A DNA stretch of 64,000 nt from Trichosphaerium sp. ATCC 40318 (lineage: Eukaryota; Protista; Tubulinea). The stretch is taken from NCBI GenBank assembly GCA_038496445.1, contig JALMLS010000255.1, forward strand, positions 434,001-498,000. The letters run 5' to 3'. This document shows positions 14,368-64,000 of this stretch, in pieces (positions within the stretch are counted from its first letter, which is position 1; every line of letters begins with the position of its first letter). A program made the translations under genes and the position numbers. A model generated the notes under the pieces. That model was not told the DNA's origin. It worked only from the letters and a program-made list of their open reading frames with translations, and searched no databases.

Positions 14368-14990
14368 CAGACAATGATAAATTGTTTGAGTGGATAGAAC
14401 CAAAAACCGTAAAGCGAAATCCTTTAAATGGTGCCATATCATTTTGCGCTTGGTTTTTAGACGACGTGCCTTTGAAACCAAAAAACTACCGTTAGAGAAA
14501 AGCCAAGACTTTCTTTTTTCAGGGAGCAAAGACGAAAACAGCCACAACAACATGGAGTATCGGCTTGAACTCTGTTTGGCCTTTATTGTAGAGGTATCCC
14601 ATTCGTAGGTGATAAGGGTTTACTGTTACCTCGTGCAGCTCCGTTGTGGTTTTTTTGTCTTTCTTCTCTCCACCAAATGCGTACACTAGCCACTAGTAAT
14701 CCTTTATAAAGGCTCTTACTCTTATTCCTTGTGAGTTCTTTGCTGCAACTTTGTTAGTTTTTGTCTGTTTACCCTCACTGCGATTGAATAGCGCAAGTAT
14801 ACCTCACAAGCACTAGAAGTTGGTCACTATTTTTTTACGCAAGAGTCCTCTGCTTACCACTCCACTGTTAGCGCTCTTCCACTGGTATAGTAGTACTATG
14901 CGCGTAGTAGCGTAGAAAGTATAGACATACACATTCTCCCGAAAACGGACATGTTGACTTGCACTTAAACGGCTTTTTTGCGTCTCGCTT
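14368..14990. repeat. Dispersed repeat, copy A (inverted relative to 62107-62892)
   Basis: For example, 14581 ctttattgtagaggtatcccattcgtaggtgataagggtttactgttacc is the reverse complement of ~62635-62684. The core is near-identical and the flanks more diverged. Confidence 0.9.
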
Positions 14991-33878: not shown

Positions 33879-34929
33879 ATGGAACAACACGGGAGTGACA
33901 TGTTGTCGACACTGCCAGACGAGTTGCTGTTCTTCCTGCTTTCGTTTTTAGACATCATTGGGTCTCTTGCCTTTACGTGCAAGAGGCTAAGAGCCGTGGC
34001 CAGGTGCTACAGTACGACCAGAACGAACAGTTGCAAGGTTTGCTCACTAATTTAGACCGGTCCATCACTATGAGAAGCGGTGTCCTAAATTACCCAGTAC
34101 TACACTGGGCTGTAGGTACGTGGCGCATACCCACAAATCGTTTTTGAAGCTCCTAACTTTTTGTAAAGACGTTTTACACATGGCAGAGGTTAGCCAAGAT
34201 AACCTCCTATGCATGTTGGAGAACATGTTCTGTGCCACAACGGCACAACCCAAAGATTGCTGGTTTGTTTGGCAAAGTACTCGCTTCATTTCTCGGAAGC
34301 TCATTCATTTGCGGTGCTTTATCCCAGGTGAACATTTCCCAGGCACGCCTCTTTGTTTGTTTTGTTTTTTTTTTGATTTTCGAAAACCGATTTTTACAAT
34401 CGTTTTTTTTTTTTTTGTTTTTTTTTTTTTGAGTAGTTGTATTCAAGGAATAATATTTTGCGTAGGCAATCGGTATTCAATCGCTACATACATCAAAATG
34501 TACAACGAAAGGTGTAAAATAGAGCGCGCCCGCGCGTTGTCACTCATGTATCTGGTTGAAAGACAAGGATTCCTTGTTTCATCAAGCGTAATGAACATGT
34601 GCACTATTGGCCCAATAGTATTGTACAGGACGAATGTGGTCCTTGGAGACCTATATGAGGCGTTAGTAGAGCTTGATAACCACATGTTTGAGCAATCATA
34701 CAATTGCTTTGAGGGTTTTTTTTTTAGAGTTGGTGAAACGTACACGTTGGGCGCTCTTGTACATGCTGATTACATCGTTGCAATCATGGACATGAATTAT
34801 TATCAAGAATATCTATGGGAAAACCGCCGATACCCATCTGAGATAGTTTCAAGACGTCAATTTGAGGAGACACTTTTGGTAAAATTTAAAAGATACCGGC
34901 CAGGTCGAGAAAAAAAAGACTCTGAATAA
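33879..34929 (+). CDS. F-box protein, multi-exon
   Basis: MEQHGSDMLSTLPDELLFFLLSFLDIIGSLAFTCKRLRAVARC F-box; long terminal exon to the stop at 34929. Confidence 0.7.
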
Positions 34930-39236: not shown

Positions 39237-41051
39237 TTAAGATAATGAAACAAACTTATGAACCCTAAATACAGGTTCTTTCGAGTACTTTTTAACGATC
39301 CCAGAATCGAGTTTAACTGAGTTTGGTGTTTCAGTTTCTGTCCATTTGAATTTCTGAACAGAAGCAGCCACAACTTTGTATAGAACTGTCATCGCGATTC
39401 TCTCTCCAGGGCATCTTCTCAAACCTTGGCCGAATGGGTACACTCTTTGACTAGGCTTTTCCCATCGAGTTGGATCAAATACCATAGGTTGATCCCACAT
39501 GTCACTGTGACACTCTGCTTGATGCAAAAACAGTAAGATAGCCTTTGCTTATTGTTAAATCATTAATAGATTGGTAGCACTTACTCCCTTCGGTATTGTG
39601 TATCCTCCTATTTGAACGCTTTCTCTGGCTTGGTGCGGTGTGAGAAGGGGTACCACAGGCTTGATGCGAAAAAGTTCTTGGATAAAGTAGTGTAGATACG
39701 TGATTTCTTGTAAATCCTACACACATTACAACTTGAAAAGCCCTTTCAACAACTAACCTTGAGAGACATCAAGTCTATATTTTTATCTCCAATTGCAACT
39801 CTAAGTTTTTCTTGTATTCTTTGATGTTTTGCAAGCATTGCGAAAGCACTAAGGAAGTAGTCAATCCTCAAGAAATTTCTAACTAAAATGCACATGCGTT
39901 TGAAGTGTGTTGGAAGTTGTGTCAACGCCTGCAGCAACAAGCTCGTCCAGAAAACCAATGAGCTCTCCATCAGTGATATCAGGTATGGTTGTTAGCAATA
40001 CGTCAAGCCAATGTCTCGTTTTATTAGGAGAATAGGTAGAACGTGCTTCCTTAATAAACTTCCCAAAGATGAAGTCTCTTCTTGTCACAACACTTTCGAT
40101 TTCCTTTACCTGAAGAACCATGTTATTTAAAGCATTGTAGTCTATTGCACTTACCCTATTACTCTCCAGGAAAGATAACATTGGAAATATGTCGCGTAAG
40201 AATGGCTCATCAGCAATTTTTATGAGTTTTATTGTAACTCCAAAAATGCCAGCCATGTCTTTATCTTGATTATTGTATGACTTAACGTCAAGTAACAAAG
40301 ACGTTATTGTATTGACTGTGAAAGCGTATGAGATATCTTTAGCTGTAACTTGTTGTTTATCTTGGGAACGTTGATTGAAAGTTATGAAATTGTCTTTGAT
40401 TACATTGTTTAGAACTCTATTGACTTGCTGTGTAAACTGTTAGGAATGATTGTATCGTACAATTCTCACCTTCATTCCCTTTTGAGAAGTCAATTCATTC
40501 TTGAATAAAGTTCTGTACCGTGTGTGGTTTGCATTTAGATTAGATAGAACGCACCCTAGAAAGGATTTAGAAATTAAGACAACATACGTTTGTTTGTCAA
40601 ACCTCCTTTTGGATCAGTTCTGTATATCATCTGAAAAGCATAAAAGTCCTCCATAGGTCTATCTGAAAGAACTCGTCTGTGTTTTATTAGTGCTTCTTTA
40701 ACCAATGATCCAGAGAGAAACACAAGCTGAAAAGACTAAGTTAAAGAAATCATATGATACAAAAAAAACCAAAGGGATGCTACTTTTTTCGGTCCGAAGT
40801 CCATGCTGTAAATATCACCAAGCTTTTTTCCGTAGTATACAGCAGTGCTAGTACGTTTTAATATAAATGTATCGAAATTAATGTACTTACTCCACCATTC
40901 TCTTCGGATCTGACCAAAGATGAAGATGCCCAATTATTGGTAGGCTTATTGGACTTGGAGGCAGTTTGTCTAATCTTCGTCTAATGTTCTTGTACAAAGT
41001 AGACAACGCTATTGATACTATCACAGCCGAAAACAAAACTAACCCTATCAT
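39237..41051 (-). CDS. Cytochrome P450
   Basis: N-terminal anchor + LPPSPISLPIIGHL, I-helix AAGVDTT, ExxR (ELFR), FDPTRW and heme motif PFGQGLRRCPG. Confidence 0.93.
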
Positions 41052-41689
41052 TACGTCCCTTTTCTGGACACGTGTATCGTTAAATAAACGTTTGAAAAAA
41101 TGGTTGATATCAGCATTTAGTTGTTAAAGTAAGGTTCATTGAATGTTCGGAGCCAGGAACAAAAGATAACTACTATGAGAGCTCAAAGATTAGAAAAGGA
41201 ATAAGCAAGTAATTGTAAATGCTACATTGTTGAATTGATGATAATCACGTGAAACAAGCATGAATATTCTGGAAGATTATTAGAACATCAAGCCAAGGAA
41301 GTCGTTGTGTTAAATTGTCTGAAAAGAAAAAAAAGACAAAGAACAGGCTGGATAAATGTATCTATTCTACTTTGTAATTTGCTAGCAAGGAGAGGTATTT
41401 ACTACGATGCCACTCTTGCCTCTAGTCTCTCAAATTGTCTCGTCTTCAGGCGAAACTTTCTAAATGGGAAGAAAAAATTGCTCGTTTTTCACTTGAAACA
41501 GCATCAAACAGTGAAAAGTAAGTCATCAAAATTACTACCGCTGAGAAGTTTAAAGTACAAAGAGCAGTGCTTGCATAAGGTAAGAAAAAACAGCAAGTAT
41601 TCTTACCTGGTATGATGAGGATGTACAACTATAACAAGTGCTATTTTAAGGACGACAAAGGGAACGCAAATAAAAGGTTGTGAAAAAAA

Positions 41690-44104
41690 TGTTTAATTTA
41701 TTTATCTATCTCTACACAATGGGATTGCCATTCTTTGACACTTGGTATTGGCACCAAAACAAATGTTTGGTGTGTGGGTTAAGTGATCAGGACACCATCT
41801 ACTTTGATGGACTGTACTGTTTAAAATAGAGAAAGTTGCAGTCAATACTTTGACATACCCATGACATTCAAAAGAGTCGTATTGGCTTTGAAGATGTTTA
41901 CTCACAACAATATTTAACATTTTCCTTCCTTCAACCGAGCAACCCCCCTCTCCAGAGGCACGGGAAACTCGAAACTTTAGAAGTGATTAAGTTCTAAAGT
42001 CCAGCCGCAGTGATTGAAAGAATTCCTACTGAAAAATACTGAAGCTCTTATATAGTGGCTTGCCTACCAACCCGTTACTCTTTGAAATTACAGGCATGAT
42101 TTCACAAGCAAGTGAAACCAAGTACTGAATTGCCCCTTTCCCTACACTTGCACAATAACATTTTAGATAACAATTGAATACACTACTCAGTGCCAACACA
42201 CTGTGGGTAATACGTTCGGTATGATACTTGGGAGTAACCCTGTTCTCTGTCAAACGTAACCGTATATATATGGTGCCCCAACTTTCATTGTGGTTGGATG
42301 TGAGTATATTCAGTGCCATCCCTCCAGGTACTTAAGAGTATTGTTCCCTTTAGAGGTAAAATGAGAGAATAAACACACTTGCACAATAACATTTTAGATA
42401 ACAATTGAATACACTACTCAGTGCCGACACACTGTGGGTAATACGTTCGGTATGATACTTGGGGGTAACCCTGTTCTCTGTCAAACGTAACCGTATATAT
42501 ATGGTGCCCCAACTTTCGTTGTGGTCGGATGTGTAGTATATTCAGTGCCATCCCTCCAAGGTACTTAAGAGTATTGTTCCCTTTGGAGGTAAAATGTATT
42601 GAATGTGTTTATTCTCTGCAACATACAAGGACTGAGCCCTTGTACATTGCTGTGCATGTCAATTCCTAAGGTGTAAGTTAGTTAACGATAAACTTATAAT
42701 CACGACTTTGAATACCTCAACTAGAATCTGTCTTGCCAAAATCTTGGTACCAACCTAAACATACCCCCCTTATCCCAAGTTTGCTCCACCTGTGTATTGA
42801 ACCAGAACTGGAAACACCATATCTACTTTCCTATAAAACATTGGTCAGTCATACATTTATGTGATTTTGTTGCCCACTGAGGGCTTCAATTACATACCTT
42901 TATAATACCACCCTTCTCTCCCTAATTGATGTACTTGGCTTGGGTGCCTTTCCATCAATTAGTTCTTGAGACACATCGATGTCTATCCCACAAGTACTTG
43001 GACATGTGCCTTTCCTTGTTGGGTAAAACTTGATGAGCTGCTGGATGACATGGCACCTCTTAGGGTACCTGCCAATTCATGATGAACCTATGACTCGATT
43101 AGCATTTCTACACTTCAAATGAGTGTTATAATGATAGAAGAGGACATATGTTAATACATACATAGATAGATAGTTGTCGCCCACTGTGGGCTTCAACTTC
43201 ATGACTGGAGGTCTCGATTAACATTTCTACGCCTCAAAATGTGCGTTATAATGATAGAAGAGAACCCATTCTCAGGGTGGACACAGCATTAAAGCTGTAG
43301 TACCACTCACTCAACAACCAATGAGTAGTGTCATTGATGGATGTACTAAGAGACAAGCTAAACTCGCCCTTTTCTATCCTTCACAAAGTGTTCTGTAGTT
43401 ACAGAGACACAATTGTATCACCTCAGACAGGAGGTGCTCGAGCCAGTCGATTACCACTGCCTATGCCATGTTTTTTACGCATTTTACATAGGTGGCTTAT
43501 GTGATAGAAGACCCAACTACAAGGGGTAAAGAGAAGCAACTTCTAGGGGCACACACTACACAAAATAATTTGTGTTTGGTATTTTTTTCTTTTTTTTTTT
43601 TTTGTGTGACTTGAAGTCTTTCTTCTTTTATGCTATATTAGGCTACACGGTTGTAAGACTGAACCTATTGAATGAAAATATCGAGTTTTCACGGCACATA
43701 CAATACCAATGTGACTCTCATAGCTCGCTGCATGCACGTCGTATTCTGTAGTTGGGTTTTAAAAAAACCAACACAACTTATTGGTTGTGCCTCTGTGCTT
43801 TGTGGTGCCTTTTGTGGTTGTACTTGCAAAAAGCAAGGGAGATTTTCTTCTCTGTCACAGACGCCCCTTACATACAACAAATTGGTGTTTTCGAGAGTCT
43901 ACTACTAGAACCGAGCATTCTTTATTTACTTTTAGAGTTTACACTTCACTGAAATATCTATTTTAAATACTCAAATATGGATAATGCACATTTCCAAAAC
44001 GCCACAAACCCTTGTGCTAGCTATTTTCGTGACTTGAGTACCGTTTCAGCGATGTTTTGGTTCGTAAAACGTGCAACTAAACGATAACTACTTTTTTCTG
44101 CTTG
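41690..44104. mobile_element. Non-coding repeated element, copy 1 (~2.4 kb; includes a ~525 bp segment absent from copy 2)
   Basis: High-identity direct repeat of 55550-57459 with the same ends in unrelated flanks. (TTTA)n left end, internal poly-T at ~43582-43603, no credible ORF, no TSD seen. The repeat is certain; mobility is inferred. Confidence 0.75.
42144..42596. repeat. Internal tandem duplication (~220 bp x2) within element copy 1
   Basis: 42144-42363 and 42375-42596 both run acacttgcacaataacattttagataac...gaggtaaaatg. Confidence 0.95.
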
Positions 44105-44899
44105 AATGCTCAAGAAAAACTATATTGCTTTGAAAACGTTACCGCATCGTGTAAAGAATAGATTCAAACGCTTTTTTGGTTGTTCACGGAATGCTCGAAA
44201 ATGAAAATTATGCCATAAAATTCAGAAACTGTGAACATAATCCTATTTTAAGCATTTGCTGTGTAACTGCAATCAAAACTATCACGTGAACAAAGCTAAA
44301 AATAGTGAAAAACTTCCGCCTTTGCTACCACCTGTGTAACGGAGAGGATATAACAAGAGGAATGGTATACGTAAGTTAAGTTTATACATATTAATAAGTT
44401 ATAGGTTGCTATATAGCAATACATCCCTCTCACAGAGCCATAGTCTCGGGTCATTAATTGAATATCTCCATGCTACAACCATACAAGAGCGCTTCTAAAT
44501 GGTAAAAACCTGTACATTAAGGCGTAGCATGATTCAACAGGGTCAAATGAAATGCCAACTGCTTCCCACTAAAAACACCACCCTTGGTACATAGTCTGTG
44601 GTATTCATTAAATTCATGAAGGTTCTCGTTGTTGTCATATTGAAAAATCAAGTGAGCTTTACTATAATTATTAACGTTGGGTTTGCTCAGCATATTTTGA
44701 TTGTAGTTGAGCCACATACTGTCTAATCATCACCAAGAAGGCAAGTGAATTTGTTCGTCACTTGTTTGAGGTAGTTTTATAAAACAATAGGGTCAAAAAA
44801 ACTGTCGTAAATCTTGAACACAATTAAAAGTTGCACTACCAATTTGCATTGTTTTCAAGGAACCCAAAACTAACTCTACTGACTTTACCTTTATGTTCT

Positions 44900-45501
44900 T
44901 TCAAACGTAAAGAACGATAATGAGCTCAAAGCGTATGAGATTGTAGCGTACTACGATTATGGATTAGGATGCTAATATCAGCTCTACACGAAAACTCCGT
45001 CATGAGCGCGATGTAGGTGAGGCTAAGTTGACTTATAATTATCGTTAGGATAGAGAGGATTTCAATAATGTTAGCCTTTGACTGTGAGAGTATACAGATA
45101 CAATGTGCACTCAAGAACAAATGATAGAAGGTTTATGCCCTTGATTAAGCATCAGTTTCCTAGATGTTACAAGGCGTATGATAAGAACGGTTACCCTTAT
45201 GAACGTGATTTTTATATCAAGGGAGAATCTGAAAGGAGTATGAGAAACAACAAGCTAGTCTACGAAAAAGCGAGGAAGTAATTACGAAACAAGACGATGA
45301 GATTAAGGAAAAAAAACAGAAAGAAGTCAAAAAGAAAAAAAAAGAAACAAAGAAAGTTGAAGACGATGACCTTGATTTGTCCTTTAGCTCCTCTGACGAT
45401 GATGATGACAGCTTATTAGTGCATCTTGGTGATTTAGACATAGATGAGTCCAAGGTAACAATGGACGATCTGGATGCTATGCTTGATGAAGCTCTGAAGT
45501 G
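44900..45501 (+). CDS. 3' part of a hypothetical gene with Lys-rich/acidic C-terminus (possibly disrupted)
   Basis: KEYEKQQASLRKSEEV..KKKKKETKKVEDDDLDLSFSSSDDDDD..MLDEALK* ends at 45501. An in-frame TGA lies just upstream (45230-45232) unless it is spliced out. Confidence 0.35.
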
Positions 45502-45629
45502 AAACCTGTAGCAATAATAAATTCCGTTTGTTTTTTTCTTTTTGGCAATGTTTCTTTGTATATAAATTCTATTGCGACGGTTTAGAGTACACTCAAACAA
45601 GTTAAATTTTTAATTTTCCTCTTGTTTTT

Positions 45630-48147
45630 ATGCTAAGACTCCGACATTTTTTCTGAAACAGTTTGTTTTGCAAAAAAAATGCTTTGCTGTCGGTACTTTT
45701 CCTCGGCATAGCACTAACGAATCGCAAAATGGTTTTTATACCTATAATTATAGAATACTAGCTACATGGTCAAAACAACACTTGAAGTTTAAGACGGTTC
45801 TGAGGTGAGTAAAAACGTCTCAAAGATTCTCGAAATCGTTTCAAAACCGATCACCCGACTTAACAGCACTCAAGGAGCCTGACATTTGGTGTTGTTATTG
45901 ATAAAGCTGTGTATGAGAGCACCTTTGTGTATATTTGTGGTGATTTTAGTCGTAACGCCTCTTTGTATATCAGAATGTACCTATCGTAACCAAAACACAT
46001 AATCTTACTATAAGTAGTTATACTGAACCAAGTGGGGTCGTTTGGTAAATTTACAAAAGATATCGTACCACAACGTACGGTTTTTTGTTTATAATCTATA
46101 TAACGCCAATCTACGTGCAGCTGGAGAGTTTAAACACCCCAATGCGTTAGCAGTAACTCTTGATAATCTATTGGTGGTAGCAGATGCTGGTTTTCTCAAT
46201 TTCTATGCTCTAAATGGTGCGTTAGCTATTTGAAAGTACAAATGCCATTGGAACACACAATTACAAAAAAACCGGTTTAATACAACACTAGGTACATTTA
46301 TACAACGCATATCGTCTTGGACGTTGTTCAACGGCGTCACCAGCACTTTTGCAAGTGGTAGCCCAACAGGTGTTGCCGTAGCTCCCGACGGTTCAATATA
46401 CGCGTCAAAGGGACAAAACCCGCTCATTGTAAGCAGTTGTAACCAATACGTTAATTGTTTTTCGCGTTTAACTAACACGTGAACAGGTGAAATTCGACGC
46501 ACAGCGTAACTTTAGCGGTGGTTTTGACGTTAGTACGTACTGTAACAGAAAAGTTTTTGGAGACTTATTTTCTTTTTCACATAGTCGCGGGAATAGCTGA
46601 AGATGCAAGCCTGTACCAGCTTGCAATCGATCCTGATGGGAAGTCAATTGCTATCACGGTAGGTTCACCAAGAGCAAGCGAATCTGGAGTAGTTATACTA
46701 AGCTTGGATGGTATGGGAATAGCGTAACGCTAAAAAATGAAATAACCTTTTCTGTCAAGGCAAATTTCGTGCTCTTATTGGCTCTGCTGCAGGCGAAATA
46801 CATCCTCACGTAGCTACTAAAAGTATTAAATTCATCTCATTTAAACTAGGGATGCCTGTGGTTATCGTCTACCGTATTGTTAGCCACAGTGCCTCACGGC
46901 AAAGAGCCTGGCATATACTTTTTTAATGCTATTGATGGTATGGTAATCTGTACTTCCTACAAATGTTGATGATGTCTAGGTAGTCTTATACACGCACATA
47001 AGCACTCAGCTCCTTCATATGGAGCTGTAGCACTACACTCTCATGATAGAATACTTACACTTAATCAACATAATGTTTCGCTTTTTGAGCTATCTTCCAT
47101 TGGTAAATTCATTGATGTTATATTTCACAGTGTGTTCTATGATGCTATTGCAATTACGTATGCACCTCAAGAACATAAAGTAATTGTTGCAGACCGACAG
47201 GGACCTACACCTATCCGTATATTCTCAAATGGCACAGGTACAACTTAATGGTATTTGCGTAATGTAATTGGAATTTAGCCATGCCTGTACCTCCTTCGAA
47301 ACCGCCTACAACTGCTCCACCATTCGATGAATCAGTGCCTACAACACCTCCTACATATATAGATCTTTGTGCTAGAGCGCCAGAGATAGAAGGAGCTACA
47401 TGTAGCGCTGGAACTTGGACTGTTAGAAACCAAACTATTTACAACAAAACGGTTTCTTTGTTGGGCAATATAGTGGTTTTTGAAGGTGCGTTAACTAACT
47501 TACATCTTTGCTGAGTTAATAATTGGCTTAAGGTACATTTGCCACACATGATGCAGTTATTAAACTTGACGATGATACAACAATCACACTTACAGGGTGC
47601 CCTGTTTTTCAACAAAACACTGTTTTTCTTGTTGAAGGACGTTTGTCAAAGATTAATTTAATGTCTTTTGGCGAACAATGTTCAGTTAAAGTGATTAATA
47701 CGACAAGTATTCTTGTCAAGAAAGGTGCTATAGTTGGTTGCATAGAGATAGGTATGGCTAATGTTTAATGACTTTTACAGGTTCTAATGAATACAACTTA
47801 GATAAGAATACAATCACTGTTTCGTTTGATTTGTCGTGTCGTGTCAGTGAAATATTAGGCACTGACCAGGACATTCCAGTAGCTCTGATCATCGCACCTG
47901 TAGTCCTAGCAATCGTTGTCATTGGTCTAGTATTTGTAGCTATATTTGTTACGCCTGTAAGAAACCGTATAAAGCATCCATTCAATAAGTACGCTTATCA
48001 AAAATCATTGGTACTTAATATTTTATTCTTAACGACGTATGTAGGTCAATAAATTACATCTCGCCTGGTTCTACAGCTCATCCCATAGACCAAACAAATG
48101 TTATGCAAATACCACTTGACTTAAGTAGCGAGGAGGAGTCTCTATAA
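45630..48147 (+). CDS. NHL-repeat-like beta-propeller type I membrane protein (start approximate)
   Basis: GEFKHPNALAVTLDNLLVVAD and GSPTGVAVAPDGSIYA repeats; Pro/Thr stalk PVPPSKPPTTAPP; TM IPVALIIAPVVLAIVVIGLVFVAIFV followed by RNRIK. Confidence 0.7.
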
Positions 48148-55549: not shown

Positions 55550-57459
55550 AAATGTTATATTTATGTTTATTTATTTATCTACACAATGGGATTGACATTC
55601 TTAAGAATGGAGATCACTGAGGCTTGACACTTGGCATTGGCACCAAAACAAATGTTTGGTGTGTGGGTTAAGTGATCAGGACACCATCTACTTTGATGGA
55701 TTGTACTGTTTAAAATAGAGAAAGTTGCAGTCAATACTTTGACATACCCATGACATTCAAAAGAGTCGTATTGGCTTTGAAGATGTTTACTCACAACAAT
55801 ATTTAACATTTTCCTTAATTCAACCGAGCAACCCCCCTCTCCAGAGGCACGGGAAACTCGAAACCTTAGAAGTGATTAAGTTCTAAAGTCCAGCCGCAGT
55901 GATTGAAAGAATTCCTACTGAAAAATACTGAAGCTCTTATATAGTGGCCTGCCTACCAACCCGTTACTCTTTGAAATTACAGGCATGATTTCACAAGCAA
56001 GTGAAACCAAGTACTGAATTGCTCCTTTCCCTAGCATAAGTTAGTTAACAATAAACTTATAATCACGACTTTGAGTACCTCAACTAGAATCTGTCTTGCC
56101 AAAATCTTGGTACCAACCTAAACATCCCCCTTATCCCAAGTTTGCTCCACCTGTGTATTGAACCAGAACTGGAAACACCATATCTACTTTCCTATAAAAC
56201 ATTGGTCAGTCATACATTTATGTGATTTTGTTGCCCACTGAGGGCTTCAATTACATACCTTTATAATACCATCCTTCTCTCCCTAATTGATGTACTTGGC
56301 TTGGGTACCTTTCCGTCAATTAGTTCTTGAGACACATCGATGTCTATCCCCCACAAGTACTTGGACATGTGCCTTTCCTTGTTGGGTAAAACTTGTTGAG
56401 GTGCTGATGACATGGCACCTCTTAGGGTACCTGCCAAATTCATGATGAACCTATGACTCGATTAGCATTTCTACACTTCAAATGAGTGTTATAATGATAG
56501 AAGAGGACATATGTTAATACATAGATAGATAGTTGTCGCCCACTATGGGCTTCAACTTCATGACTGGAGGTCTCGATTAACATTTCTACGCCTCAAAATG
56601 TGCGTTATAATGATAGAAGAGAACCCATTCTCAGGGTGGACACAGCATTAAAGCTGTAGTACCACTCACTCAATAACCAATGAGTAGTGTCATTGATGGA
56701 TGTACTAAGAGACAAGCTAAACTCGCCCTTTTCTATCCTTCACAAAGTGTTCTGTAGTTACAGATACACTATTGTATCACCTCAGACAGGAGGTGCTTTG
56801 AGCCAGTCGATTACCACTGCCTATGCCATGTTTTTTACGCATTTTACATAGGTGGCTTATGTGGTAGAAGACCCAACTACAAGGGGTAAAGAGAAGTAAC
56901 TTCTAGGGGCACACTACACAAAATAATTTGTGTTTGGTATTTTTTTCTTTTTTTTTTTTTTTGTGTGACTTGAAGTCTTTCTTCTTTTATGCTATATTAG
57001 GCTACACGGTTGTAAGACTGAACCTATTGAATGAAAATATCGAGTTTTCACGGCACATACAATACCAATGTGACTCTCATAGCTCACTGCATACACATCG
57101 TGTTCTCCAGTTGTGAAGTTGAACAAAAACCCAAAACACAACTATTGGTTGTGCCTCTGTGCTCTGCGCTGCCTTTTTGTACTTGCAAAAAGCAACAAAG
57201 ATTTGCTTCTTTGTCGCAGGAGCCCTTACATACAACAAATTGGTGTTTTCGAGGGTCTACTACTAGAACCGAGCATTCTTTATTTACTTTTAGAGTTTAC
57301 ACTTCACTGAAATATCTATTTTAAATACTCAAATATGGATAATGCACATTTCCAAAACGCCACAAACCCTTGTGTTAGCTATTTTCGTGACTTGAGTACC
57401 GTTTCAGCGATGTTTTGGTTCGTAGAACGTGCAACTAAGCGATAACTTTTTTCCGCTTG
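55550..57459. mobile_element. Non-coding repeated element, copy 2 (~1.9 kb)
   Basis: Direct repeat of 41690-44104. It lacks the copy-1 segment ~42144-42668 (junction at ~56033, ttcc(c)ta microhomology) and has a ~20-nt insertion at ~55602. Confidence 0.75.
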
Positions 57460-57479: not shown

Positions 57480-57680
57480 TAGTAATGCCACTGTTTTAAT
57501 AGCTCTGTTATTGAGTATAACCGACACGTACATGCTCAAACACCAGATATGTTGCTAAGTACTATAGTACAACCACAACAAACAGTTGCAAGGTTTGCTC
57601 ACTAGTTTAGAACGTTCCCTCATATTGAGAAGCGGTATTAGATTACCCAGTACTACACTGGACCGTAGGTACGTGTCCTG
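57480..57680 (+). pseudogene. Fragment homologous to the F-box gene at 33879-34929
   Basis: aacagttgcaaggtttgctcactagtttaga..gagaagcggt..ttacccagtactacactgg..gtaggtacgtg matches ~34026-34122, including intron-like sequence. Confidence 0.8.
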
Positions 57681-62106: not shown

Positions 62107-62892
62107 CAAGCGGGAGAGGCAAAATGCCGAAACGTGTAAGTGCAAGTCGGCATATCCTTTTCACGAGCTATGCTTTCTAGACTACTACGTAGAGTACTAC
62201 TATGACAGTGGAAGAACGCTAACGGTGTTAAGCAAGAGGAAACAAAACCGTTGTAGCGAGTAAATACTTCAGCGAGAAGCAATAACAGTAGTTGCAATGC
62301 CAATATCAATTGATGCACTTATAACGCGATACTCAATCTAATGCGCACAGCACTCTTTCGCACAGTACTCTTTCGCAATGTATGGACGAATGAAGTACTC
62401 ACAAAACTAATGAGTAATCTTGCGGAAAGAAAACAGTTACCAACTTCTAGTGCTTGTGAGGTATACTTGCGCTATTCAATCGCGCAGTGAGGGTAAACAG
62501 ACAAAAACTAACAAAGCTGCAGCAAAGAACTCACAAGGAATAAGAGTAAGAGCCTTTACAAAGGATTACTAGTGGCTAGTGTACGCATTTGGTGGAGAGA
62601 ATAAAGACAAAAAAACCACAACGGAGCTGCACGAGGTAACAGTAAACCCTTATCACCTACGAATGGGATACCTCTACAATAAAGGCCAAACAGAGTTCAA
62701 GCCGATACTCCATGTTGTTGTGGTTGTTTTCGTCTTTGCTCCCTGAAAAACGAAAGTCACGACTTTTCTAAAGGGTAGTTTTATGGTTTCAAAGGCACAT
62801 GTCTAAAAACCAAGCGCAAAAGGATGGGCACCATTTACAGTATTTCGCTTTACGGTTTTCTACTCAAAACAATTGTTAATTTATCATTGTCT
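62107..62892. repeat. Dispersed repeat, copy B (inverted relative to 14368-14990), with ~180 bp extra at 62241-62417
   Basis: Reverse-complement alignment to 14368-14845 (62420-62892) and to 14846-14990 (62107-62240). Confidence 0.9.
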
Positions 62893-63096: not shown

Positions 63097-64000
63097 ATGC
63101 AATTAGTGATAGCTGTTTTCGCGTTTGTTCTTGTTGGCTTTACTGTTGGTACGCCAAGTGCGCGTAATTAGATAGTAACAACGCCCTGTAGCGCAAGACA
63201 CTACCGGTGTTGTTTTCCCTCCTGAATTGCAAGGAAAACGAGGCCCATGCGTACTAAATAACCTGACGGAACCAATTGTGCGTTATTTCGATAGTTGCAG
63301 TATTTAAAGTTGTCTAACCCTAAAAAAGGCTGTACCTGGTCTACAACTATGTACTGAGTACAGAGCTCGGTCATGCTGCACATTAGAACAAGAAAACGAA
63401 TTTACTGATCCCTCAATTGCCGATTTTTTAATTTTACCAACTCTTGGTACTCTATTAGCTCATACTTAGTAACAGCAATACCAATTCGTTTTAGGAAGCG
63501 ATGGGTGCTACGAAAACTTCAGAAGAGCGTTGTGTTATTGGGTTTGTAACCCTGACGATAGAACCTTTATTCGTTTTACTGTACGTGATTTTCAACGGTT
63601 TATTGTATTAATAGTCTTGTTAGAGCGCTGATAATTTTACAATTAATGTTGCAGAGCCTCATGCCGCTAAGGTTTATAGTTCTTGCTCTGGACGTTGTAT
63701 TCGTGCTGGCACAATATCTGAGACCATCAGACAACGTTATGCAGGTACAATAAGCGTCATTGCATGTCAAAAAAAACCAAATTGTTTTTGTTTCAACTAA
63801 GCAATTACTAGATGGCATTACTTTCTTGAACTCCCTTACCTCCAGTGCTGTTCCTGGTTATACGTACGCGATTTTATAAGAGTTGTTTCGCGTTGAGATA
63901 GCTGGTGGCTTGAGACTGACGCGATTTTTAAGGCCTTCTATTGATACTCCGGCCCAAACGTATACACTCGATGATGGTGGCCTAAATTTGGTGAACGACA
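63097..64000 (+). CDS. Secreted Cys-rich protein with NPC1 N-terminal/folate-receptor-like domain (partial)
   Basis: Signal peptide MQLVIAVFAFVLVGFTV; exon GSDGCYENFRRALCYWVCNPDDRTF and HAAKVYSSC resemble the NPC1_N/FOLR Cys pattern. Confidence 0.55.

Follow-up and report, generated by a model that had tools for sequence, protein, structure and literature searches.

Three hairpins with a common two-sided basal motif in a duplicated, apparently transcribed element of Trichosphaerium

Introduction

Three short hairpins in DNA of Trichosphaerium sp. ATCC 40318 were described in a first-pass annotation as sharing an invariant GATTA/TAGAA internal loop while the helices around it covary, a combination that was taken to be typical of a protein-binding or tertiary RNA module. 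The locus raises the question of whether such a module exists and, if it does, in which molecule, on which strand and to what end. We addressed this question computationally in a 64-kb window of contig JALMLS010000255.1 (the window being the whole stretch of DNA that was analysed) and in public sequence collections.

Results

The Shared Motif and Its Occurrence in the Window

The three hairpins, here called H1, H2 and H3, were found on the + strand exactly where the annotation had placed them (43094–43142, 43213–43262 and 43446–43512). Each has UCGAUUA on its 5′ arm and UGAUAGAAGA on its 3′ arm. The shared motif comprises 17 bases (7 + 10 nt), is two-sided and lies at the base of the hairpin. 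The pattern TCGATTA-N(20–50)-TGATAGAAGA matched exactly at five places in the window (43095, 43214, 43447, 56458 and 56573), each of them on the + strand, against a chance expectation of 0.00 estimated from 100 dinucleotide-preserving shuffles. A sixth site, at 56806–56872, differs by a single base (TGGTAGAAGA).

Both strands of the window were also scanned with a descriptor composed of a 3-bp closing stem, GATTA, 10–80 nt, TAGAA and the complementary side of the closing stem. With zero mismatches, the scan returned these six sites and no others, and elsewhere in the window matches with one mismatch occurred at the rate seen in shuffled sequence. We conclude that the motif is genuine, restricted to one strand and limited to a single duplicated element.

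The Duplicated Element

A self-BLAST of the window aligned 41735–44104 to 55624–57459 at 95–98% identity, with copy 2 lying 13.9 kb downstream of copy 1. The features of the element other than the hairpins are as follows.

41710..44104, no strand: duplicated segment, copy 1, extending beyond the stretch that public run X1 covers, by ~30 nt upstream and ~500 nt downstream
55590..57459, no strand: duplicated segment, copy 2, without the 530-bp block 42144–42674 of copy 1 and with a 22-nt insertion at the equivalent of ~41735
41741..~43548, presumed + strand: stretch covered by public run X1, with no long ORF and with the hairpins in its 3′ third
42872..42889, + strand: second small repeated hairpin, GCCCACUGAGGGC + UUCAA, 222 nt upstream of H1
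43179–43196, + strand: sister copy of the second small hairpin, 17 nt upstream of H2
43585..43606, + strand: run of T, just past the end of the X1-covered stretch

Within 42144–42674, copy 1 alone contains an extra 231-bp tandem duplication. All three hairpins are present again in copy 2, as the annotation had noted, H1 and H2 being identical and H3 differing by one base. At 95–98% identity, copy 2 is a recent duplicate, which leaves three independent hairpin instances in place of the six that the annotation had counted. The second small hairpin had four matches against zero expected, and both of its copies recur in copy 2.

No long ORF was found in the element. None of eight ORF translations from the element was present in the protein collection (exact look-up), and searches with a 97-aa ORF and a 58-aa ORF, the latter overlapping H3, yielded no homologues. 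Among the ORFs around the element, no Pfam domain was detected except a P450 fragment at 39882–40298, and those in and around it gave no transposase or reverse-transcriptase match. The window contains other dispersed repeats.

Hairpin Structure and Folding

The stems listed in the annotation were all present: CTC/GAG, CATT/AATG and ACAC/GTGT in H1, ACGC/GCGT in H2, and, in H3, GTC/GAC and CAC/GTG together with a long stem that includes U.G and G.U pairs. The six hairpins are arranged as follows.

43094..43142, + strand: H1, 49 nt, with CUC/GAG closing stem, GA/AA mismatch, U.G, UA/UA, G.A mismatch and CAUU/AAUG; apical part with 3 × 3 loop, ACACUU/GAGUGU stem and 5-nt loop
43213..43262, + strand: H2, 50 nt, with ACGC/GCGU in place of the ACAC/GUGU of H1; 88% identity to H1
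43446..43512, + strand: H3, 67 nt, with 7 + 10-nt basal motif, GUC/GAC closing stem and CAC/GUG; apical part longer and unrelated to that of H1/H2, with a 9-bp stem containing U.G and G.U and a loop containing U6
56457..56505, + strand: H1 in copy 2, no difference from copy 1
56572..56621, + strand: H2 in copy 2, no difference from copy 1
56806..56872, + strand: H3 in copy 2, one change, equivalent to 43504 A>G, by which the C.A beside the motif becomes C-G

Pairs were counted with a script that lays both arms in register. From the outside inward, all six sites read N-N′, U-A, C-G, G.A, A.A, U.G, U-A, A-U, the outermost N-N′ being C-G in H1/H2 and G-C in H3. Inside the A-U there is one variable position (G.A in H1, A.A in H2, C.A in H3 of copy 1 and C-G in H3 of copy 2), followed by C-G, A-U, and then U-A in H1/H2 or C-G in H3. 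The GATTA/TAGAA region is a 2 × 2 purine mismatch (GA opposite AA), or a 3 × 3 mismatch if the U.G is taken as unpaired. The 2 × 2 mismatch is closed by C-G and U.G, after which comes a two-pair U-A/A-U clamp. Of the invariant internal loop that had been described, the common motif thus stands, whereas the size does not: a tandem mismatch of 2 × 2, at most 3 × 3, takes the place of a 5 × 5 purine-rich loop.

Folding with ViennaRNA recovered the expected stems for H1 and H2. The minimum-energy fold of the copy 2 H3 was exactly the proposed architecture, including the 2 × 2 loop (−17.7 kcal/mol, z −2.3). The closing stem of the copy 1 H3 was missing from the minimum-energy fold, so H3 is the weakest of the three hairpins; such omission of a closing stem is common where loops are closed by non-canonical pairs. 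Minimum free energies on the + and − strands, respectively, were −9.7 and −5.7 kcal/mol for H1, −9.0 and −6.2 kcal/mol for H2, and −13.3 and −12.2 kcal/mol for the copy 1 H3; for the copy 2 H3 the − strand value was −14.8 kcal/mol. Folding z-scores of the hairpins were modest (−1.1 to −2.3). A 700-nt region folded equally well on both strands (z −3.7 and −3.8).

Conservation among the Hairpins

The annotation had also claimed compensatory changes around a fixed loop. Three pairs in total changed on both sides and remained paired: in H3 relative to H1/H2, the outer C-G became G-C and the inner U-A became C-G, and between H1 and H2 an A-U became G-C. Another double change, from U-A in H1 to C × U in H2, broke the pair beside the apical loop, and the chance of random pairing is ~0.37 for each of the H3 covariations. 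The covariation is real but statistically thin, and the claim as worded is overstated, with three retained pairs set against one broken pair.

Comparison of the two copies of the element revealed 22 change events in 42674–43600. The 166 nt of hairpins contained one change versus 3.9 expected, a deficit that is not significant (P ~0.1). This sole hairpin change, 43504 A>G, repairs a mismatch (C.A to C-G).

The extent of the similarity between hairpins was more informative on what may be under constraint. The BLAST block common to H1 and H2 corresponds exactly to the hairpin span (43094–43142 versus 43213–43262, 88% identity). In their 30-nt flanks, 17 of 30 positions agree, as compared to 16.6 ± 1.7 for random 30-mers of the same composition. 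The 17 motif bases of H1/H2 all recur in H3, whose interior is unrelated and whose flanks are near the random level (16–20 of 30 versus 16.6), with one exception, the H2–H3 downstream comparison (20 of 30, ~2 sd above random). That H1 and H2 are alike within the hairpin and not beyond it, and that H3 resembles them in the motif alone, points to constraint on the motif, putatively as a structural or recognition module. Such precise sparing of a hairpin, or of the motif alone, should not be the outcome of neutral decay after duplication. It is also possible that the hairpins were copied as cassettes and the apical part of H3 was swapped in one event. With three independent copies to compare, the evidence for conserved RNA structure is thin.

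Evidence for Transcription and Its Direction

Public run X1 dates from 2015; its library kind was guessed as RNA, and its contigs carry no strand. X1 contained 20% of the sampled words. Coverage by its contigs was zero at 40200–41578 and again at 43549–46100, on either side of the covered stretch. The summed depth was 150–212 at the left end and 4–13 over the hairpins, about 10 times lower. The contigs were short and included variants: a copy-2-like form skipping 529 nt, two other forms skipping 101 and 133 nt, and an H2-like hairpin with five additional bases in the apical loop. X1 therefore contains several versions of the element.

Given coverage confined to 41741–~43548, the silent flanks and the variants, the hairpins are probably part of a multi-copy non-coding transcript of ~1.8 kb, within its 3′ third. 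This placement takes X1 to be an RNA library, the + strand to be the transcribed one and the covered stretch to represent a single ~1.8-kb molecule, all of which we infer. If X1 is RNA, the element gives rise to a discrete, well-expressed, multi-copy non-coding transcript of ~1.8 kb; if X1 is DNA, the depth pattern means a high-copy repeat and not expression. The left boundary of the coverage, 41741, coincides with the 22-nt indel where the two genomic copies diverge, so that it may mark a break in the assembly and not the place where transcription starts.

The + strand is, in our view, fairly likely to be the functional one. It gives the more stable fold for every hairpin, and the U.G and G.U pairs of H1 and H3 become C.A mismatches on the − strand. 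A TATA-like T-rich tract before 41741 and a GU/U-rich tract after the right end also favour the + strand. The run of T at 43585..43606 could be a downstream U-rich 3′-end element of a + strand RNA or the oligo-dT promoter tract of the next gene. The − strand is favoured by the depth gradient, which resembles the 3′ bias of oligo-dT-primed libraries, by AAUAAA-like words left of 41741 and by the equally good folding of the 700-nt region.

Search for Relatives

The covariance-model search proposed in the annotation was run within the window, with a model built from H1 and H2. The model re-found H1 and H2 in both copies and yielded nothing new: H3 scored 10.7 bits (E 3.9), which is within noise, and nothing else in the window was better than E 0.6. 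As H3 falls at the noise level, the model is too narrow, the three hairpins sharing little beyond the 17-nt module.

Outside the window, a metagenome scan with the specific pattern returned zero matches. A relaxed pattern returned 70 metagenome and at least 107 viral matches, whose flanks pair in 31% (metagenome) and 25% (viral) of cases versus ~37% expected at random. Flank pairing being no commoner than by chance, these matches are random or belong to unrelated coding sequence. The neighbouring P450 exon, used to look for syntenic loci, had no match at E ≤ 1e-10. Nine unclassified lncRNAs, in three groups, are described in the Physarum genome paper; four 12–21-mers of the element were absent from its supplement. 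A full-text literature search for two motif words found nothing relevant. As far as these searches reached, the element is apparently lineage-restricted.

Comparison with Known RNA Classes

Rfam models at gathering thresholds had zero matches in the whole window, and with E up to 10 they gave nothing but noise in 41500–44200 (E 3.9 and above). No tRNAs were found.

In box C/D snoRNAs, a terminal stem is adjoined by RUGAUGA close to the 5′ end and by CUGA close to the 3′ end. TGATGA occurs at 43031 and 43080, but there is no CTGA in 43081–43600 and no Rfam C/D match above noise, and the class was rejected. The boxes of the hairpins read CGAUUA and UGAUAGAAGA, unlike boxes C and D. The likeness to the terminal core motif of these snoRNAs consists of short conserved two-strand boxes at the base of a covarying terminal stem, tandem purine mismatches and a variable interior; the hairpins differ in being without the 3-nt bulge and in having A.A, not A.G, as the second mismatch. 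A K-turn has a 3-nt bulge followed by tandem sheared G.A/A.G, and its non-bulged GA abuts the canonical stem. By inspection, the symmetric series C-G, G.A, A.A, U.G, U-A, A-U, without a bulge, does not correspond to a K-turn, nor does the 2 × 2 loop in the minimum-energy fold of the copy 2 H3.

The sarcin-ricin motif or loop E consists of AGUA opposite GAA with a bulged G, and was rejected, also by inspection, on account of the 5′ strand, which reads GAU(UA) and has no AGUA. In common with loop E and with tandem sheared G.A loops, the hairpins have a GAA-containing strand facing a purine-containing strand between Watson–Crick flanks; unlike in loop E, the opposite strand is GAU, the loop is symmetric (2 × 2 or 3 × 3) and there is no bulged G.

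In miRNA precursors, the stem is long enough for a ~21-nt duplex and the mature arm is conserved. H1 and H2 have ~13 standard pairs in 49–50 nt, with conservation at the base and not along an arm, which speaks against this class. Box H/ACA snoRNAs are hairpins in which the guide pocket varies; an H (ANANNA) or ACA box lies 3′ of the stem, and the RNA matches a target in rRNA. There was no Rfam match for this class, and the hairpins display the opposite of a guide pocket, with a conserved internal loop and variable helices.

The Class I RNAs of Dictyostelium (RF01414) are 42–65 nt long and have a terminal stem with an adjoining motif (Kjellin et al. 2021, PMC7919456). The motif is on the 5′ side and is 11 nt long, the RNAs themselves start with a conserved AAG and end with CUGU, and they are encoded by separate genes with a DUSE ~60 nt upstream (PMC7919456). 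RF01414 did not match 41500–44200 even at E up to 10, and the hairpin termini read NUC...GAN; the hairpins were therefore not assigned to this class. Neither was an upstream element found at a fixed distance: for the repeated small hairpin, the interval is 222 nt in the case of H1 and 17 nt in that of H2. Both kinds of RNA are built of small units (42–65 nt versus 49–67 nt here) with a short stem joining the ends, a motif adjacent to the stem and a variable remainder, and both kinds may be of amoebozoan origin. They differ in that the Class I motif is one-sided and its units are separate genes, whereas the motif described here is two-sided (7 + 10 nt) and its units lie within a ~1.8-kb covered stretch.

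At the level of the whole element, a transposable element was considered and rejected: the two copies in the window have neither terminal inverted or direct repeats nor long terminal repeats, and inspection of the ends of the homology revealed no poly-A tail or target-site duplication. Telomerase RNA, considered because of a TEP1-like neighbour, was rejected as no telomere-template-like word occurs in the element. The sole CCCTAA-type match in the window, a weak one, is at 63312.

Discussion

Our preferred reading, put forward tentatively and short of being called probable, is that one structured module exists in three paralogous copies, the stem-loops, on a ~1.8-kb, ORF-poor, multi-copy and apparently transcribed element, and that the basal module is a repeated recognition site for one RNA-binding protein. 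Each module would begin with a short closing helix, N-U-C/G-A-N′. The G.A and A.A of the tandem mismatch would come next, forming non-canonical purine pairs and closed by U.G; further in, the U-A/A-U clamp of two pairs would be followed by a single position at which a mismatch is tolerated and by an apical helix that varies. The basal module would be read by the protein, and, with its site repeated along the RNA, the RNA could be a multivalent scaffold or decoy. Proteins and tertiary contacts typically dock at tandem purine mismatches that are clamped by Watson–Crick pairs, and a protein-binding or tertiary role of the putative module, as suggested in the annotation, would be in line with this. 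As one RNA would carry this module at the base of three hairpins that are otherwise unlike, a reiterated binding site is the most economical reading.

A rather unlikely alternative is that there is no function at the RNA level and that the element is a dispersed repeat, either transposon-like or a fast-evolving modular non-coding locus, with palindromic cassettes that arose by internal duplication and with the apical part of H3 replaced in one insertion or deletion. The element does occur twice within 14 kb, the X1 variants have module-sized indels (529, 101 and 133 nt), other dispersed repeats are present in the window, and depths of 150–212 beside silent flanks would indicate a high-copy repeat if X1 is DNA; the weak statistics of the covariation and of the substitution deficit fit as well. 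A mobile origin would sit poorly with the lack of terminal repeats (TIR or LTR), of a visible target-site duplication or poly-A tail, and of transposase or reverse-transcriptase matches among the ORFs in and around the element. Two further observations are hard to obtain by neutral drift: the similarity of H1 and H2 ends exactly at the hairpin, with random flanks beyond, and all 17 motif bases survive in the otherwise diverged H3.

It is unlikely, too, that the hairpins are processing cassettes, in which the basal module would mark endonuclease excision of ~50–70-nt small RNAs from a polycistronic precursor, in an architecture analogous to that of small RNAs with a terminal stem and an adjacent conserved box. 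The module is conserved at the hairpin base, and the conserved block stops exactly at the closing stem; the hairpin lengths of 49, 50 and 67 nt resemble those of the Dictyostelium Class I RNAs (42–65 nt; PMC7919456). The ~10-fold lower depth over the hairpins would fit a short-lived precursor, but is equally explained by paralogues that share the left part only. Against such cassettes stand the absence of C/D boxes, the lack of any Rfam or RF01414 match even at E up to 10, and H1 and H2 stems that, at ~13 bp, are too short for Dicer-type products.

Finally, it is improbable that the − strand or the DNA itself is functional, with GAUUA/UAGAA being the wrong strand of a pyrimidine-rich loop or of a pair of DNA sites (TGATAG is GATA-like): the contigs are directionless, the highest depth is at the left, which would be the 3′ end of a − strand RNA as in oligo-dT-primed libraries, AAUAAA-like words occur on that strand ~40 nt left of 41741 and the 700-nt region folds as well on it, but each hairpin loses stability there and the U.G and G.U pairs of H1 and H3 turn into C.A mismatches, coverage ends at 41741 before the AAUAAA words with no A-run loose end reported, and DNA sites need neither flanking complementarity nor an apical stem per unit.

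Returning to the reiterated recognition site, it is possible, if doubtful, that the C-GA-U/G-AA-G mismatch with its UA clamp represents an undescribed protein-recognition RNA module on an abundant, modular and fast-evolving family of lncRNAs in a slime-mould-like protist, the RNA serving as a multivalent scaffold or sponge by analogy with roX, the Xist A-repeat or CsrB. As it stands, the module is a well-defined yet small and unreplicated candidate, and it opens no long-standing question. If it is a true recognition element, the 17-nt motif provides a handle on an apparently abundant, lineage-specific lncRNA family in a poorly studied protist lineage.

Reiterated protein-binding hairpins are familiar from the five IREs in the 3′UTR of the transferrin receptor, the Xist A-repeat, the roX boxes and the GGA hairpins of CsrB/RsmZ. 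There is no sequence relationship between these and the hairpins described here, which number three, and whose presumed host transcript is lineage-restricted in the searches made. What they have in common is that several copies of a small motif lie on one transcript, with the motif sequence fixed and the surrounding helices varying. The element is plausibly a new, lineage-restricted example of a well-known type, the non-coding RNA composed of reiterated small hairpins, and, if the proposed reading is true, it adds one more case of function arising from such repetition.

Small hairpins and palindromes in the element

Besides H1, H2 and H3, the hairpins that carry GAUUA on the 5' side and UAGAA on the 3' side, the element contains a second small repeated hairpin, GCCCACUG(A/U)GGGC followed by UUCAA. 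Four matches to it were detected against zero expected (positions in the window):

42872-42889, copy 1 of the duplicated segment
43179-43196, copy 1
56233-56250, copy 2
56538-56555, copy 2

This hairpin lies 5' of H1 and of H2, at unequal distances, and its loop is altered in the second instance in copy 2. A near-palindrome, GAGACACAAUUGUAUC, occupies 43403-43419 in copy 1 (56765-56781 in copy 2); copy 2 differs by two substitutions, 43406 G>T and 43411 A>T, and with these the sequence becomes a 6-bp hairpin free of mismatches, GAUACA-CUAU-UGUAUC. A 9-bp hairpin at 41972-42000 (ACUUUAGAA / UUCUAAAGU, loop GUGAUUAAG) contains both UAGAAG and GAUUA, but in reversed order and in a structural context unlike that of H1-H3, and the presence of these words is probably a coincidence.

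Duplication beyond the covered stretch

The duplication extends approximately 500 bp past the stretch covered by run X1, a public library tentatively taken to be RNA, to 43590-44104 in copy 1 and 56960-57459 in copy 2, where X1 coverage was absent. This part begins with a 137-nt block without a single difference between the copies (43590-43726), followed by a hypervariable block (43727-43864) and then a near-identical one. A gene lying downstream, behind the T-run (43585-43606), might have its promoter or its first exon within this part. Two inverted-repeat pairs, 43508-43521 with 43747-43760 (93% complementary) and 43314-43331 with 43771-43788 (89%), join the 3' part of the element to a stretch past the T-run.

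Genomic neighbourhood and internal tandem duplication

Dispersed repeats were found at 14403-14850 and 62412-62859 (inverted, 94%) and at 34004-34122 and 57559-57675 (86%), the latter adjoining the end of copy 2. An exon-like ORF at 39882-40298 (-) matched cytochrome P450 (Pfam E 5.6e-08); X1 coverage of this gene region was absent in the part compared with X1 (from 40200). Within copy 1, a 231-bp unit is present as a tandem duplicate with 97% identity (42144-42674 in the window) and is absent from copy 2. One X1 contig possessed the copy-2-like junction, skipping 529 nt, and thus forms with and without the 42144-42674 block are both present in the X1 library.
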